DNA of 64,000 nucleotides from Dimorphilus gyrociliatus (lineage: Eukaryota; Animalia; Annelida): the NCBI GenBank assembly GCA_904063045.1, contig CAJFCJ010000006.1:5224408-5288407 (forward strand). The letters are read 5' to 3'. This document shows positions 26,936 to 34,943 of this stretch, one piece after another. The notes below the pieces were generated by a model. That model had not been told where the DNA came from, ran no database searches, and saw only the letters and a program-made list of their open reading frames with translations. The position numbers were made by a program, and so were the translations under genes. The first letter of the stretch is position 1, and the number at the start of each line of letters is the position of its first letter.

Positions 26936-29143
26936 ATGATAAAGAAAGTATTAAGTGTTCTTTGGGGAGCCATCGAAGTTTTTGTCTACGGTGGTATAAC
27001 TTTCGGATGGGCCTCATTGGTTTTTGTATTAAAGAAGGAAGGATTCTACGCAAATGTCTGCGACAGTTACAATTCAACAAATGTAAATTCAACAGTAGTA
27101 GAATGTGCAGAACAAAATTCAAAAATGATTTTAATAATGACTATATTTTTGGCGGTTGGTGGAATAAGTACATTCTTTACAGGTTACTTTTACGATAAGT
27201 TTGGTCTAGCATATTCAAGATTATTAGGAGGAGCTCTTTACGTAACTTCCTTACTTTGCTTGGCTTTAATTACTGCAAAACAACAATGGATGCTATTTCC
27301 AGCAACAATTTTATTGAATAGCGCTGGTTTTTTGACATTAACAACAAACATGCCTTTAAGTAACCTAATACCAAGGGCGAGATCAACTATAATCACCTTA
27401 TATAACGGTTTCTTCGCAGGAGCCATTATGATTTTCGAATTAGTTAAAATGGCATACGAGGTATATAGTTTCTTACATAGAATAATCTCTAATACTTTCT
27501 ATCTATCTAATATATTTAAATGTAGAAAAAAAACTACTATTCCTGATCATTTAGATTTTCTACTTAATGTCTTTTTAGTTTAGAGAACAAATGAATTATT
27601 TATAGAGAATATCTCATAACAAATTATTTGATTATATATTAATGTCGTACTTCGATTACAAACCATTAATCATAGTAAAATAGCACATATGGCTAGATAG
27701 TAGATATATACCTTTTTGTTAGTTTTTCGTCTTTAATCTAAAAGAGGAGTAGATAGAGAATAAAAAAGAGACAATATACAATATTATACTAATTTAAAAA
27801 TATCAATTGATCTAGAATCTTTTCTGGTTTTTAAGTTACATAAAAAAAACACTACACTTAATTTGAAGAGTCTATTAAACATTGGAATACGAAATAAAGG
27901 TACAAAGGATGAAAAAACTTGTATAAAAAAGAAATTTTATATAAATTCTAATAGAGAGATATTTTTTCTATAAAAGAAACTATATTTAGGGTGGAATAAG
28001 TCTTCAAATTTCTCTATCTATTTTGGCACTCGGTCAATTAATATGTCTTGGATTTACTATATTCATTCTTCCGAGAAAAAATGTACCGTGGCCGTTACCT
28101 AAAAATTATGAAATTGCAACGCTTTTAAATAAATTCTGTAGAAAGGAAAAGTATGTTGTTAAAGAAGAGAAAGAAGAAAAAACATTTATTGATGATGAAC
28201 AAAATAAAATTGAAACAGTTAATAACCCACCAAAAATGACCTTCGTTCAGTGCCTTTTGACACCTCAATTTCTATTACATCTTGCGTTCATGTGCGTTAT
28301 ACAATTACGTTTGAGTTTTTACTTGGCAACGTTAAATCCATGGTTGTCGGAATTGACAGGAAATGATCCAAAGTTGATCAGCTTGTATACTAATATATTC
28401 TCCTATATACAATTAGCTAGTATTGCCTATTCACCATTTGGAGGATTGATAGTTGACAAATTTAAAGCTGATTTAAGAGTTTTGGGAATCTTATTACTGG
28501 TGGCAAATATTTTTGGATTAATAATAGCAATACCAGGAATGGTACGGTCTCTTCCTCTTCAAATTTTAGGATTTATATGCTTAATGGGATTTAGAGGATG
28601 GGCATACGCTTTCAATCCTACAGTTGTTGCTCTAATGTAAGTACCTCTATACAAAATTAGTTGTACCTTTATATACGCTAAACCTTTTATGTTATATTTA
28701 GATATCCAGGCGAACATTTTGGAAAATTATTTGGAGTTATTTTAATGGTTATATCTGTGTTTGGATTAATGCAATTTCCTTTGTTTAAACTGCTTCATGG
28801 ACCATTTAATGGAAATATGCAATATGTAATAAAACATGTTTCTAAAGATATATTTTTACCCTTATTATCATTCTAAAAATGGATTTATTTCTAATATAAT
28901 TAATATATTCCCATGCAGGTTCAGTTAATATTCATAGGACTTCATTTATTGACGATGGCTTCACCAATTTATATGATTGTCAAAGAGCATATAAAGAGAA
29001 GTAAATAATCTTTATTATCAAATATTTCTAATATTTTCATTTATACATTTATGTTTATCTAAATAGAAAACGAAACCAACAAACCAGTAACATTAAATTT
29101 ACAAGAAAATGGAGATAATGAAAAACAAACCCCTCCTCTATAG
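26936..29143 (+). CDS. SLC43-family MFS transporter (SLC43A3-like; 5 coding exons)
   Basis: IEVFVYGGITFGWASLVFVLKKEGFY, G.FYDKFGLAYSRLLG, SNLIPRARSTIITLYNGFFAG, RLSFYLATLNPWL, YSPFGGLIVD and YPGEHFGKLFG; about 12 hydrophobic segments. Confidence 0.88.
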
Positions 29144-29779
29144 ATAAATAGAGAAACGTAATATACTGTATTTAATATACAAGTATAAATAGTAATAGTA
29201 GTTATTTTATGAATATCATTATTTTAACTCTGCCATAAATTTTTCTATTTTGTGCTTGTTTGTATTTTTTATAATTGGATTGATTAGTTTTATTGTTACT
29301 ATGTGGAAAATGGTTGCTTTTTTAAGCGTAAAGAACTGAGTTCAATTGTATAGTTACTAACTTTAACACATACTAATATATATATATATATACTGTATAT
29401 TGTAAATTAGTTTTCTTTCTATTTCCTTGTGATGCGTTAATATTTATCATGAATTTATTCAATCAACTTTTTTAGTTTGTACATTATCTTCTCCATCTTA
29501 TTAGTTTATTCTATTGCTTTTGCGATTTAACAATTTCAAATAACTTTTAAACTTTTTATTTTGATTTGTTTTTCCTATAAAAGAAATCAATACAATGTAA
29601 ACAAAATTGTCTGTCTTTCTTTTCCTTTGGATAATCTATTTACACGCTTTTCTCTTTAATTCTTATACAAAAAATTCATTAGGGACTTAGCTTCAATTTA
29701 AATAGTTCACTCTCTTTTTTTCAAGTTATATGTATTTCTTTATGACGTTGCGTCTTACGATTAATATATTGTTTTGTCA

Positions 29780-32700
29780 ATGGGATATGTGTTAATAATG
29801 ATATCTTGGTTATATTTTATCACCTTATTTGATTCTTATCAGACTTATACTAATATTTTAAAGATTAAGAGCTGGGATGATGTGATAACAAAGTACTGGA
29901 GGGAAAACAGATATGATAAAACTACATATACAATAAATAATACTGTAAGGATAGCTAAAGATGCTCCATCAGCCCCAATTTTAAATGAGGAATTAAAAGA
30001 TGCCATTTACAAAGATAAGACTCTATATACAAGTTCGGAAGACGAATATTTAAGTAAACGAGGTTACTCTTGCGCATCATCCCTAATGTCAATTGCAAAT
30101 ACATCAAAATCATTTCTCAAACATTCGAGTATAGCTCATATTGCTATAACAGGTAGAGAGGTTAGTTTAATATTAATACTTATAATTTTTATTACCATTT
30201 GAAAGTTTAATGATTATATTCGTTTCGTTATGTCGTTGGCTATGAAAATAATCTAAAAGCATCAATCAATTGAATTACCTTGTCATTGGTGTACGTCAGA
30301 TGAATATATCGAATCAAAGAATACTTTACCAAGACAAGGAAAAGGAATGAATTGGTATAGAGCAAAAAGGAATAAAGCTAGAGATGATAAGCATAAATTC
30401 TATTATAAAATTGAAAAATTACAATTATCCATGAATAAATACGAACAATTGGCTGATAGAAATTTAGTTATACGTCAACTAAATAGAGAAGGTGACGCTG
30501 ACACTGGCGTCTATTTTTGTGAAAAAAGTCATATTTTTGATCAGATGAAAAAAATTAATAGAGAAAGTTCTTTAAAAGCGATAAAAGATCAAATTTGACA
30601 AAATGAATATATAAAACAAATAAATGAATTTGTCTATTAATTTTGCATGAATTCTAGAAAAAAGATAATATTAATTATATTGAAATAGACGCTCCACGTG
30701 GGTCTGAGAGTATTTTTTACTTATTGGAGTACTTAAACAACAAACTATACAATATAACAAGCTCTAGAAATACTTCACATATTTATAAGCCACCGACATT
30801 TGATGAATTTAATAAACCTATAGAAGATCCAATGAAACAACGTAAAGATATTCAAATATCGAATAAATTAATACTTATTTATCTTGATATTGAATACAAT
30901 GTCTATCAATTGCCTCCCAACGAAGATCAAAGATATTTTATGGAGAGAGTTTGCTTAGCAAATGATAAACAATGCTTATGGAAATACAAACTTAAACCAT
31001 CAATCTCTCTATTTGACGTAGGCTTGGGTAAAAATCTAAATGTTTTATTATATAATAGTTAAATACAAATTGAATTTCTTACTGATAAAATGACAGATAA
31101 TATACAAATACAAGCTAATAATGAATTTCCATTAAGTAATAGAATAGAACTATGTGAACCGTGCGATCAGAAGGATGCTTTTGAAACGTATTTGAGTTTT
31201 TGTTGGCTTAGATTTGTAAATAGAAATGGAGATTTTATCGAAGAATTAAGTATTGATATGATACAACAAATATATGATAGAGTAGAAAAATGGAAACCTA
31301 CAGATATTCTTGATAAAAGGAAACATTATCTTTTAAAAGTTTTAGCATTCTTTCCACAAGGAATTTCTTGTTATAATACAATTTTTGAGGGATACGAATG
31401 GTATCTTTTACCGAGAACTGAGGATTCCGATAACACTCATTTCGATGTTAAAATGGCAATAAAAGAATTTTCTAAAAAGCATGGAACAAATGTAAAATTA
31501 GCCCAATCAGATTTATTACCTCAATTCGAATTACTAAGAAAATCTTGCTACGTTAATTGTTCTATTGAAGAAAGAAAACGACTAAAAATATTAGAAGGAT
31601 CAACAGAGTTATTTTTTACATTTATAGATACATCTGAACTCTTTGTACCGACAAGATCTATTGTTCAAGTGAAAAGAATAACATATACAGCAACAGAGGA
31701 CGAAATGTTTAAAATGTTTTGTCCAAATCCCTCAAATTACGGTACAGTTAAATGGAAGAAAGGTTCAGAATATATAAGCAAGGAAAATCTAGAAAAACAT
31801 ATGAAAATATCATATAGCTATGCTTTACTCTTTAGTCGTCTAAAGCCGTCCGATGACGGTTTATACTTTTGTGAAAATTGCGATAGGAATTATAAAAATT
31901 GTATCTTAGCAGGATCATTACGTCTTAAAGTATGTTCTTTCTTTGAAATATTTGAATTATACCTAATTTTTCAATTACTAAATTATATTGTAGATTCATA
32001 AAAAACCGCCTACAATATTTAGTATTCGTTTTTATAGAAGTGCTTTATTAATTTCCTACATAATAGATGTAACTATTTTATGCGGGGGTTGTCTAATTAT
32101 ATGGTTTAGGCATAAACGTCAGAACATCAGTAGAAATAGATATAAAAATTTATTGGAGAAAAGTCTACCTAGACAGATAAAAAAAGTGATTAAAAAACAA
32201 GCTATGGATACCTTAGGTACAAAATTTAGGAAATCATTAAAAACTGAAAGAAGACAGAAAAGGGAAGAAGAACTTTATTCTTTGCACGAGAATACGAATG
32301 CTTCTAATTTTAATAGTAATAACGTTATAATAAACAAAGATAGTATTATCTTTAATCGTAATTCATGTGTTAATCCTGATGATTTCTTAAGATCTCCTTG
32401 CAGTATTGACGGTTATATTTAAAACTTAAAGCAATTTCTCTTTCCCTTTTTTTAATTATTTAATTGCAGGAAAAAGTTACAAAAGTTTACAATGCAGAGA
32501 ATTACAAGTGATGATAGCCACAGAAGATGTTATTCTTATTGATGTTAGGACAAAAATAGAAGTTACAAGAACAGGATTAATTCCTAAAGCTTTTATTTTA
32601 CCTGGTAGGATATTTTTTAATTGAATATTTCACATATTTCATTACGTTCTATATGACTAAAATATAGATAATGAAATTCTTCAAGCAATGTTATTGGATA

Positions 32701-33122
32701 AACAAACATTCTCTGATATTTATCAAGTGAAGAAACCGTATTTATATCAAAAAATTGTAGTCTATGGAAAGATTAATGATTCAAGAGCATTTAACTCATA
32801 TAAGAATCTAGAATATTTAGGATTTGAGTAAATTGCGTCCCGAACCATTTTCTTAAATTATTAATTATTTCTTAATCTATTCTTTAGCACTTTTCTGTAT
32901 CCTGGAGGTTGGGAAGAATGGAAATTACTTGTTGGAAAACAAGCGGCAAAGAAATTGACATATCTTAATTTATACGCCTTACAAAATAGAGAATCAGTTA
33001 TTCTTCACATAGATAACAATAGAAAAAACTTTGAAAACTCATCTGATAGCTCTGCTGATGAGGAAATTGAAGAGGAAATCAATCAATTTTCAGAAAGTGA
33101 AAACTTATTAAAGTTTAATTAG
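29780..33122 (+). CDS. FAM187-like two-Ig-domain type I membrane protein with a C-terminal rhodanese-like domain (8-exon model, 935 aa)
   Basis: Exons 29780-30160, 30260-30566, 30689-31027, 31097-31929, 31994-32411, 32470-32604, 32668-32827 and 32888-33122 join in frame through GT-AG introns. Features: signal peptide; Ig1 (IELPCHWC...MNWY...LVIR...DTGVYFC); Cys-rich linker (CEPCD...FCW, KSCYVNCS); Ig2 (MFCP...VKWKK...DDGLYFC); TM; rhodanese fold (LIDVR...GLIPKAFILP...IVVYG...YPGGWEEW). Confidence 0.7.
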
Positions 33123-33404
33123 AATTTTTGAAATTTTCAAAACTTTATATTTTTATATATAAATTCTCAGATAATTTGATATTTTTGTTGACTATTCTTA
33201 AATATTATTCTGATTTCTTTTTTAGCACTTTGATATTCATTCAAGTGATATTTATACGAAAATATACTCTATTAAAATTTATCAAAATACTCATTTATCG
33301 CTATTATCGCCCACCCATGTGTTAGATCGAATTGACTTTATTCATATTCTTCTCAAATTTACGGTGTTCTTCTCATTTAAGCAAGCAAATTAAAGTTTAT
33401 AATA

Positions 33405-34943
33405 ATGAGTGATAAGATGGATATTAATGTAATACCGGATAAAAAGCTCACAACTAAGTATGTGTCATCTTTGAGCAAAATCTATTGGAAGGATGAAGAA
33501 AGTTTCAAAAAAACTATCGCTGCTCTGAATTCTTATGGTGTCTGTCCTCGTTGTTGTCTTAGGTTTTTGGCTATAGACAATCAATCAATCTATAGGTCGA
33601 GTTTTCAGTGGATGGCTGATTTTTTAAAGGAAAGAGAAGAAACAATGTGTTCCAATATATGTTGTGCTTGTTTAGGCGTTCTACAAGAGAAATATTGCAG
33701 AGAAGAGTTTCGCAAAGAAATCATTAAAACACTTATGGAGGCTAAGTATGAATATGATTCATTTTTTGTTGCTATAACTCTTCCTGTATCGACGATGATG
33801 CGAGAGCATTCAATCTGGTTGAAATTAGCAGAACAAGATAAAACTGCCTTTAATGATTATAGACGAAGAGATTTAGCTTCTCTAAAAGATTGCTGGAAAT
33901 GGGTAAATGGTGACGATCTCGGAGAATCTCTGGGAAGGAAGAGTGAATACTCAACAGAATCAGCCTGTTTTGAAATATCATTGAATTTTTCACATAAAAC
34001 TCAATTCAGAGAATGTTATCCCCTGGATGATTACTTTGAAGAATTTCGTAAAAGAAAGAGTGATGACATAGTTTACACTAGGAGTTCAGTACAAAGAGCT
34101 TTAGTAAAATTGTCAGACGACAGATTTCGAAAACTCTACTCGTCTCCTCCAACGATTCCTAAAGATGAATGTACAGTAGAAATTCAATTTAAGCAAGATT
34201 CTATTTTTGTAGCAGGAAGATACAACAAATACAGCAGAAAACTATCGCAAACTCCTTGGGTGCTAGATTCGGGCGAACGCCGGACTAACAGCTCTGTTCA
34301 AGAAATGCTTTGCGATTCTATTAAATCTCACTTTAAGGCAGATAGTTTTGTGTTTACCTCCTCTGGAAGAGAAGATGTAGATGTTAAAATGTTAGGCGAA
34401 GGTAGACCTTTCATCGTGGAACTTATAAATCCACATGTAACCACCATCTCAAAAAGTGAGCTTAAAGATATTACCAAGAAAATTAACACTCAAAAAGATA
34501 TTGGTGTAAGAGACTTACAACTTGCTCTAAGAAGTGACACTATGAAGTTAAAAGAGGGTGAAGAACAGAAGAAGAAATCTTATTCAGCATTTTGCTGGAG
34601 CAAAGAACCTATTACGCAAGAAGAATTGGATAGCAAGTTAAGTAACATTAAAGATCTCAAAGTCAATCAAAGGACACCTATCCGAGTTTTACATAGGAGA
34701 ACTAACTCTTACAGAACTAAGATGATTTATAGTCTAGAAGCCAAGTCAATTAACGAGAAGCATTTTATCCTATATTTGACGACGCAAGCAGGAACATATA
34801 TTAAAGAATTTGTTCATTCCGATTTTGGTAGAACAACACCTAGTCTAGGAAGTATTTTAGGTGTAGAATGCGATATTCTTGAACTAAATGTAACTGCAGT
34901 AGATTTGGATTGGCCAGAGCGCCTGGGAGATGAAGAAAAGTGA
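33405..34943 (+). CDS. PUS10: tRNA pseudouridine synthase Pus10 (intronless)
   Basis: CPRCCLRFL, VAGRYNKYSRKLSQTPW, catalytic SSGREDVDVKMLG, QRTPIRVLHRR and TQAGTYIKEFVHSDFGRT. Confidence 0.96.
   Translation: MSDKMDINVIPDKKLTTKYVSSLSKIYWKDEESFKKTIAALNSYGVCPRCCLRFLAIDNQSIYRSSFQWMADFLKEREETMCSNICCACLGVLQEKYCREEFRKEIIKTLMEAKYEYDSFFVAITLPVSTMMREHSIWLKLAEQDKTAFNDYRRRDLASLKDCWKWVNGDDLGESLGRKSEYSTESACFEISLNFSHKTQFRECYPLDDYFEEFRKRKSDDIVYTRSSVQRALVKLSDDRFRKLYSSPPTIPKDECTVEIQFKQDSIFVAGRYNKYSRKLSQTPWVLDSGERRTNSSVQEMLCDSIKSHFKADSFVFTSSGREDVDVKMLGEGRPFIVELINPHVTTISKSELKDITKKINTQKDIGVRDLQLALRSDTMKLKEGEEQKKKSYSAFCWSKEPITQEELDSKLSNIKDLKVNQRTPIRVLHRRTNSYRTKMIYSLEAKSINEKHFILYLTTQAGTYIKEFVHSDFGRTTPSLGSILGVECDILELNVTAVDLDWPERLGDEEK

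Follow-up and report, generated by a model that had tools for sequence, protein, structure and literature searches.

Can a single gene place a rhodanese-type domain on the cytoplasmic tail of an immunoglobulin (Ig)-type membrane protein? This question is raised by a 64,000-nucleotide (nt) stretch of the genome of the annelid Dimorphilus gyrociliatus (contig CAJFCJ010000006.1, positions 5,224,408 to 5,288,407; hereafter the window), where positions 29780-33122 of the plus strand hold a series of open segments with Ig-like, transmembrane (TM) and rhodanese-like features. Ig-type single-pass receptors usually signal via kinase, phosphatase, immunoreceptor tyrosine-based inhibitory or activation motif (ITIM/ITAM), death or TIR modules. 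An earlier reading of the locus, made from the letters alone (the sequence-only reading), did not know the combination of Ig domains, TM helix and rhodanese domain from any described protein, and our full-text literature search combining three terms likewise found no paper describing an Ig receptor with a rhodanese-homology tail. We conclude, with a probability of about 0.7, that the locus is one gene of eight exons (E1 to E8), with its RNA running from ca. 29660 to 33176 on the plus strand, whose spliced mRNA encodes a fused Ig-Ig-TM-rhodanese protein, a type I membrane protein of ca. 940 residues. This is probably a lineage-specific new domain architecture, known from two related species.

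The eight open segments are joined via seven GT..AG introns with matching phases into one frame, and none of the codons split across introns (N, D, G, D and D) is a stop. If exon 3 begins at 30665, the joined frame measures 2832 nt (943 residues), while an intron 2 acceptor at 30689 gives exactly 2808 nt, which reproduces the frame and the seven in-phase introns of the sequence-only reading. We preferred 30665 because the AG at 30687-30688 is absent in the related species introduced below and the seven codons just upstream (N-x-N-Y-I-E-I) are conserved. The window is AT-rich (31% G+C), and the introns of the gene are 58-99 nt long, in agreement with the published median intron size of 66 nt for D. 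gyrociliatus (PMC7854359). The architecture hinges on intron 5 (32412-32469), a 58-nt GT..AG intron with a strong pyrimidine tract and stops in the read-through frame. Its letters are exactly as previously described: GAC G, ending at 32411, is followed by GTTATA, and TTGCAG, ending at 32469, by GA AAA, so that splicing would skip the in-frame TAA at 32420-32422. Whether the RNA is in fact spliced here is a separate matter, which is taken up below.

Is this chain of exons maintained by selection? A word search with E4 (31097-31929) returned one protein, the sister-species orthologue P0001, with 72% identity. P0001 and the whole locus are carried by a contig from a Logan assembly (L001), which provided the sole comparison species, so that two species in total underlie all comparisons made here; only this one other species with the E4 region turned up when 1.84 billion representatives were searched exhaustively with a profile. 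A further contig, L002, was considered as a source of the spliced form and rejected, being identical and colinear to L001. No paralogues of the gene were found in the window or in L001. Over their whole length, the two loci align with ca. 70% nucleotide identity and are syntenic, with Pus10 downstream of the Ig/rhodanese gene in both. Five of the first seven exons have identical lengths in the window and L001 (307, 363, 833, 135 and 160 nt), the remaining two differing by three nucleotides each (418/421 and 363/366); E8 differs more (235 and 229 nt) and encodes a divergent acidic tail. Exon identity is 0.70-0.79 (0.65 for E8) and intron identity 0.47-0.59. Intron lengths lie 4-20 nt apart, by non-multiples of three, while phases and GT/AG borders are retained at all introns; alignment ambiguities at introns 2 and 7 were settled by hand. 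In E1, E2, E4, E6 and E7, ratios of non-synonymous to synonymous change (dN/dS) are 0.08-0.16 with dS above 1.2. Saturation of dS left E3, E5 and E8 without a computable ratio; changes at third codon positions still dominate there, as in every exon. Purifying selection thus acts on most exons. Conserved exon lengths, phases and dN/dS together indicate that the exon model, including the rhodanese-like exons, is a conserved coding structure and not a chance chain of open reading frames (ORFs).

We next consider whether the Ig/TM part and the rhodanese part belong to one gene. Conservation reaches the donor of E5 and halts there: E5 ends in a motif conserved in both species (S-C-V-N-P-D-D-F-L-x-S-P-C-x-I-D), and read-through beyond it ends as G-Y-I-stop in the window and as G-stop in L001. 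The phase-1 donor of E5 and the phase-1 acceptor of E6 are conserved in both species, with intron 5 measuring 62 nt in L001. Further, E6 and E7 of L001 lack an ATG, as do the 22 codons that stay open ahead of E6 when the RNA is unspliced, so that in this species these first two exons of the rhodanese part are translatable only by splicing onto E5. The sole in-frame ATG of the window, at 32511 (a GTG-ATG pair), is not conserved, and a start there would truncate the domain. In the 13 E6 codons upstream of this ATG, differences between the species are distributed 3/1/6 over the three codon positions, a pattern that indicates coding sequence.

RNA data came from one run, X1, whose type is unrecorded, and assembled contigs were compared over 29500-33500. 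X1 behaves as RNA, since its contigs cover 29660-33176, leave the flanking intergenic stretches bare (zero depth at 29500-29633) and show GT..AG joints for introns 1, 3, 6 and 7. The first contig spans 29660-30160 and thereby the 5' untranslated region (UTR; 29660-29779) and E1; the E1/E2 joint (30160/30260) and the E3/E4 joint (31027/31097) are each found spliced. A contig of 1958 nt comprises 31096-32603, 32667-32827 and 32888-33176, lacks introns 6 and 7 and continues unbroken past 32422. E4 to E8 thus lie on a single contig, which extends ca. 54 nt beyond the stop codon through the 3' UTR (33123-33176). A poly(A) signal, TATAAA at 33158, is situated 18 nt before the observed RNA end; none is present in 32412-32469.

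These observations bear directly on the possibility of two adjacent genes, of which the first, encoding Ig-Ig-TM, would stop at the TAA at 32420-32422 and the second, a small rhodanese gene, would start in or just before E6. Such an arrangement would account for the in-frame ATG at 32511 and for the fact that no spliced contig crosses 32412-32469. It would, however, leave the relative without an in-frame start, forfeit the first 13 codons of E6 although they evolve as coding sequence, and call for a terminator and a promoter within 58 nt that lack a poly(A) signal. The single contig running through the region and the conserved phase-1 splice borders argue against it as well, and we regard two genes as very improbable. 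A separate rhodanese start had previously been proposed at an ATG at 32491. This ATG actually lies at 32492 and is out of frame; it opens 16 codons in the window and only ATG-TAA in L001, and the proposal can be dropped. The claim that the Ig, TM and rhodanese-like exons form one gene is borne out by the conserved boundaries and phase, the missing start in E6 and E7 of L001 and the one RNA contig reaching from E4 to the 3' end.

What kind of domain do the last three exons encode? E6 (32470-32604; dN/dS 0.13) would supply the first third of a rhodanese-like domain (L-I-D-V-R ... G-L-I-P-K-A), E7 (32668-32827; dN/dS 0.08) its central strand and active-site loop, and E8 (32888-33122) its end (P-G-G-W-E-E-W), followed by an acidic, Ser-rich tail with E-x-x-x-L-L (33093-33110) and the TAG stop (33120-33122). 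E6 matched the Pfam Rhodanese profile (PF00581) over positions 4-36 of 102 in both the window (E 0.02, 15.6 bits) and L001 (E 0.013, 16.4 bits). Searches of the PDB by exon yielded nothing significant, a rhodanese-like entry (2hhg) appearing only at E 0.18 for E6; E7 and E8 alone gave no Pfam match and no PDB match at E<=10. A reference profile of 118 columns was then made from four E. coli rhodaneses (GlpE, PspE, YgaP and YibN). The best hhalign matches of the three exons fall on columns 17-49 (E6, E 7e-5), 53-72 (E7, E 0.05) and 95-106 (E8, E 0.08), so that both their order and their spacing are correct. In shuffle tests with a hidden Markov model (HMM) of the same four sequences, E6 reached p<=0.002 in both species, as did E7 of L001 (8.2 bits, HMM positions 37-68). 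The succession of I-D-V-R, G-x-I-P-x-A, a hydrophobic strand followed by a loop, and G-G-W-x-x-W is characteristic of the rhodanese family. Judged from these matches, a rhodanese-type fold of the C-terminal domain is very likely.

The position of the catalytic residue could be assigned from the same alignment. hhalign puts Q-K-I-V-V-Y of E7 onto T-P-V-M-V-M of GlpE, and the next residue, a Gly, therefore corresponds to Cys65 of GlpE. Both species have this Gly (32766-32768) where active enzymes carry the catalytic Cys, and their G-K-I-N-D-S-R loops are identical. The domain thus lacks the hallmark of active rhodaneses and Cdc25, a catalytic Cys opening the active-site loop, and with Gly in its place no persulfide or thiophosphate intermediate would be possible. 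The sequence-only reading had suggested a docking or redox module. A docking role is still plausible from the predicted domain, while a redox or sulfur-transfer role is unlikely given the Gly found in both species.

Comparable domains exist in other settings. The N-terminal domains of MAP kinase phosphatases (MKPs) and the rhodanese domain of USP8 are rhodanese-type interaction modules without a working catalytic Cys, and in TBC1D23 an inactive rhodanese domain is likewise used as an interaction module (PMC7274447). As in the present case, these are single domains without a working catalytic Cys inside a larger protein, and they serve binding. In contrast, proteins of the TBC1D23/MKP/USP8 type are soluble or peripheral, with the domain joined to a phosphatase, TBC or protease domain, whereas here an Ig-type membrane protein would carry it on its cytoplasmic tail, with support for the fold coming exon by exon. 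E. coli YgaP and YibN (loci L005 and L006) resemble the predicted protein in having one rhodanese domain tethered to the membrane by a single or few helices, located C-terminal to the domain in YgaP and N-terminal in YibN. They differ in being bacterial and in having neither extracellular Ig domains nor a large ectodomain; YgaP is also catalytic, with a loop Cys.

The remaining exons encode the ectodomain, the membrane helix and the proximal part of the tail; domain scans and AlphaFold2 (AF2) models were made exon by exon. E1 (29780-30160; dN/dS 0.16) contains the start codon or codons, a hydrophobic N-terminus and the N-terminal ectodomain with two N-x-S/T sequons. Its second ATG, at 29798, is the start conserved in L001, and a signal peptide is predicted from hydrophobicity (Kyte-Doolittle maximum at residues 1-19). 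E2 (30260-30566; 70% amino acid identity to L001, dN/dS 0.13) encodes Ig-like domain 1 (Ig1), with the pattern C...W...D-x-G-x-Y-x-C and a Pfam V-set match at E 9.6e-4. E3 (30665-31027) is a spacer of no recognised family with two sequons, and E4 combines a Cys-rich spacer (residues 1-177) with Ig-like domain 2 (Ig2, ca. 31630-31929). Ig2 gave weak Pfam matches to Ig_2, Ig_3, V-set and I-set, and profile matches to Ig repeats of large multi-Ig proteins over E4 positions ca. 178-277 only (E 4.6e-26 to 1e-10). Neither E1 and E3 nor the first 177 residues of E4 matched any family, and Protein Atlas features gave no usable match for E4. By profile for Ig2 and by pattern plus a sub-threshold V-set match for Ig1, the predicted protein is a member of the Ig superfamily. 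In total, the ectodomain measures ca. 620 residues, with the two Ig-like domains ca. 300 residues apart, five N-x-S/T sequons and cysteines mostly in E2 to E4.

E5 (31994-32411), which has one 3-nt indel relative to L001 and ends in phase 1, encodes a membrane helix of 22 residues (32042-32107; Kyte-Doolittle value 2.33 in a 19-residue window), followed by R-H-K-R and a basic cytoplasmic tail. The basic residues after the helix imply an inside-positive type I topology. The cytoplasmic part would comprise ca. 277 residues in the spliced model and ca. 104 even if intron 5 were left unspliced. The C-terminal tail is acidic and poorly conserved except for Q-F-S-E-x-x-x-L-L. The pattern [DE]xxxL[LI] is known to bind adaptors, and the E-x-x-x-L-L of the tail fits it; as such a motif would be sensible only on the tail of a membrane protein, it provides a small added argument for the fusion.

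Several observations weigh against the fused protein. Intron 4 and the key intron 5 are both still present in the 1958-nt contig, and none of the X1 contigs shows a joint for introns 2, 4 or 5. The decisive junction is thus one that we infer, its spliced form being unseen in RNA. As assembler contigs keep the dominant path only, spliced intron-5 forms may exist, but they were not the major form in the X1 sample. At the level of domains, the rhodanese matches of E6 are below the Pfam gathering cut-off (22.2 bits), and E7 of the window and the E8 peptides of both species did not score above shuffles with the four-sequence HMM. The V-set match of Ig1 is also sub-threshold (19.8 bits against a cut-off of 26). 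Both AF2 models were poor and below use for fold searches, with a mean predicted local distance difference test (pLDDT) score of 43 for E4, where only the beta-sandwich part of Ig2 reached 60-85, and of 42 for E2.

How far do these points favor other explanations? The weak scores of the C-terminal exons could mean that they encode another small alpha/beta domain with rhodanese motifs arising by chance, since only E6 is weakly significant, the E7 and E8 searches of Pfam and PDB came back empty and three of the peptides do not exceed shuffles. Under that explanation, however, the best hhalign matches of three separate exons would have to fall on the same profile in the correct order and spacing by coincidence, E6 would have to match Pfam Rhodanese in both species and E7 of L001 to pass the shuffle test, and all four motifs would have to fit the rhodanese family. 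We therefore consider a different fold improbable.

The RNA data, in turn, raise the possibility of one transcription unit that as a rule keeps intron 5 in its RNA. Its main product would then be an Ig-Ig-TM protein that stops three codons past 32411 (one codon in the relative), and the rhodanese form would be a minor or a stage- or sex-specific isoform, produced via regulated removal of a detained intron. This would explain why the X1 contig keeps introns 4 and 5 but has lost introns 6 and 7, why spliced and unspliced forms of introns 1 and 3 have similar depth, and why a stop follows almost directly after the donor in both species. Yet X1 shows introns 2 and 4 just as unspliced, even though no conserved product could be made without their removal. 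The RNA of this gene in X1 thus seems to be largely immature and tells little about the fully processed mRNA. Moreover, purifying selection on the rhodanese exons (dN/dS 0.08-0.13) is as strong as that on the ectodomain or stronger, while the read-through C-termini are not conserved. Normal retention of intron 5 is thus rather unlikely. The probability that intron 5 is regulated and often stays in the RNA is sizeable. The sequence-only reading had named 32411/32470 as the joint to be checked in RNA, and had set against itself the case of no spliced reads together with polyadenylation after 32422 and separate transcription of the rhodanese exons. The first half of this case was found, as no spliced form was seen, but the second half was not, as there was neither polyadenylation after 32422 nor a separate rhodanese transcript.

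Is the ectodomain related to a known receptor family? A FAM187-like ectodomain had been proposed on the basis of motifs. FAM187A/SPE-40 is a conserved sperm fertilisation factor, and the family layout comprises a signal peptide, two Ig-like domains (human residues 48-129 and 273-361) and a TM helix followed by a short cytoplasmic region (10.64898/2026.05.13.724128; 10.64898/2026.05.14.723898). The SPARK preprint gathered the family by BLAST at E<0.001 in diverse bilaterians, with the human protein finding the nematode one only at E 1.7e-5 (10.64898/2026.05.13.724128). Our sequence tests used E4, which holds most of the motifs cited in the proposal. The E4 word search found no FAM187 relative, returning only P0001. 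A two-species E4 profile detected no FAM187 protein at E<=10 among 2173 candidates of 152-485 residues. In the exhaustive profile search of 1.84 billion representatives, no FAM187 appeared, the matches being the sister-species orthologue and generic multi-Ig proteins matching Ig2. The weaker of these matches (P0003, P0009, P0015 and P0017-19) were rejected as relatives, since they are ordinary multi-Ig proteins, e.g. from a fish genome, and not FAM187.

The predicted overall plan of the protein is that of FAM187/SPE-40: a type I protein that crosses the membrane once, with a signal peptide, two Ig-like domains and a spacer between them, the second domain lying directly ahead of the helix. In contrast, its ectodomain is nearly twice as long (ca. 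620 residues, compared with ca. 360 in FAM187A), as is the spacer between the Ig domains, at about twice the length (ca. 300 compared with ca. 140 residues), and the whole protein is more than twice as long. Its cytoplasmic part of ca. 277 residues with a predicted folded domain also differs from the short one of FAM187, SPE-40 being almost exclusively extracellular. Significant sequence similarity to FAM187 was not found for E4. The proposed FAM187 resemblance of the ectodomain is thus not supported by the searches and dimensions.

The gene might nevertheless be this lineage's FAM187/SPE-40 orthologue, with added ectodomain segments and an added cytoplasmic domain. The identical order of parts (signal peptide, Ig, spacer, Ig, TM) and the wide distribution and strong divergence of the family among bilaterians are compatible with this (10.64898/2026.05.13.724128). 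The three E4 searches and the Atlas features, none of which gave any FAM187, together with the longer ectodomain and cytoplasmic part, speak against it. Because the family is very divergent we keep this kinship as an unlikely prospect, set low. Even more doubtful is the combined picture of a putative dinophilid FAM187/SPE-40 fertilisation receptor that carries a Cys-less rhodanese docking domain and a sorting motif and is switched by removal of a detained 58-nt intron; if true, it would be the first gamete-recognition Ig protein wired to an intracellular domain.

Returning to the fused Ig-Ig-TM-rhodanese protein, which we prefer, the following mode of action may be proposed. From N- to C-terminus, the protein would consist of a signal peptide, the two-Ig ectodomain of ca. 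620 residues with its sequons, and a helix with basic inner residues, followed on the cytoplasmic side by a basic tail of ca. 100 residues, the Cys-less rhodanese-homology domain of ca. 110 residues and the acidic tail ending in E-x-x-x-L-L. The Ig ectodomain would bind a ligand or partner, either in cis or on another cell. The inactive rhodanese domain may act as a protein-docking or anion-binding module, not as a sulfurtransferase or phosphatase, comparable to other Cys-less or inactive rhodanese domains, and the acidic di-leucine-like motif could direct adaptor-dependent sorting. If the fused protein is real, it would add a new cytoplasmic module to the receptor repertoire and offer a tractable case in which to ask for the binding partners of Cys-less rhodanese domains. 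Were the link to FAM187 true as well, it would bear on a newly described sperm fertilisation complex.

A number of further observations were made at the locus. The 5' UTR contains an upstream ORF of 21 codons (ATG at 29730 to TAA at 29795), which overlaps the start at 29780 and ends three bases before the ATG at 29798. Splicing efficiency in X1 is strikingly uneven within this one small gene: introns 1 (30161-30259) and 3 (31028-31096) are present in spliced and unspliced form at similar depth, splicing is complete at introns 6 and 7 and apparently absent at introns 2, 4 and 5. Retention of intron 4, as in the 1958-nt contig, would extend the E4 frame across 31930-32001 by 23 codons that pass through a hydrophobic stretch to a stop, adding a hydrophobic end of 21 residues, and yield a form without E5. 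As a conserved alternative anchor this form was rejected, since read-through in L001 stops after five codons. Two X1 contigs match 31789-31988 and 30600-30628 / 30927 onward at 95-99% and then continue with ca. 255 letters absent from the window; these contigs could be chimeric or could derive from a partial, diverged copy at another place in the genome.

Upstream of the Ig gene, a plus-strand gene at 26936-28640 with long hydrophobic ORF segments resembles a multi-pass transporter and ends before the stretch of zero depth at 29500-29633. Downstream, a single-exon Pus10 (tRNA pseudouridine synthase) gene occupies 33308-34943, only ca. 130 nt beyond the point where the RNA of the Ig gene ends. 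The Pus10 RNA contig begins at 33308 and is ca. 3-4 times deeper than that of the Ig gene. L001 shares the Pus10 neighbor together with a minus-strand dynein light chain gene.

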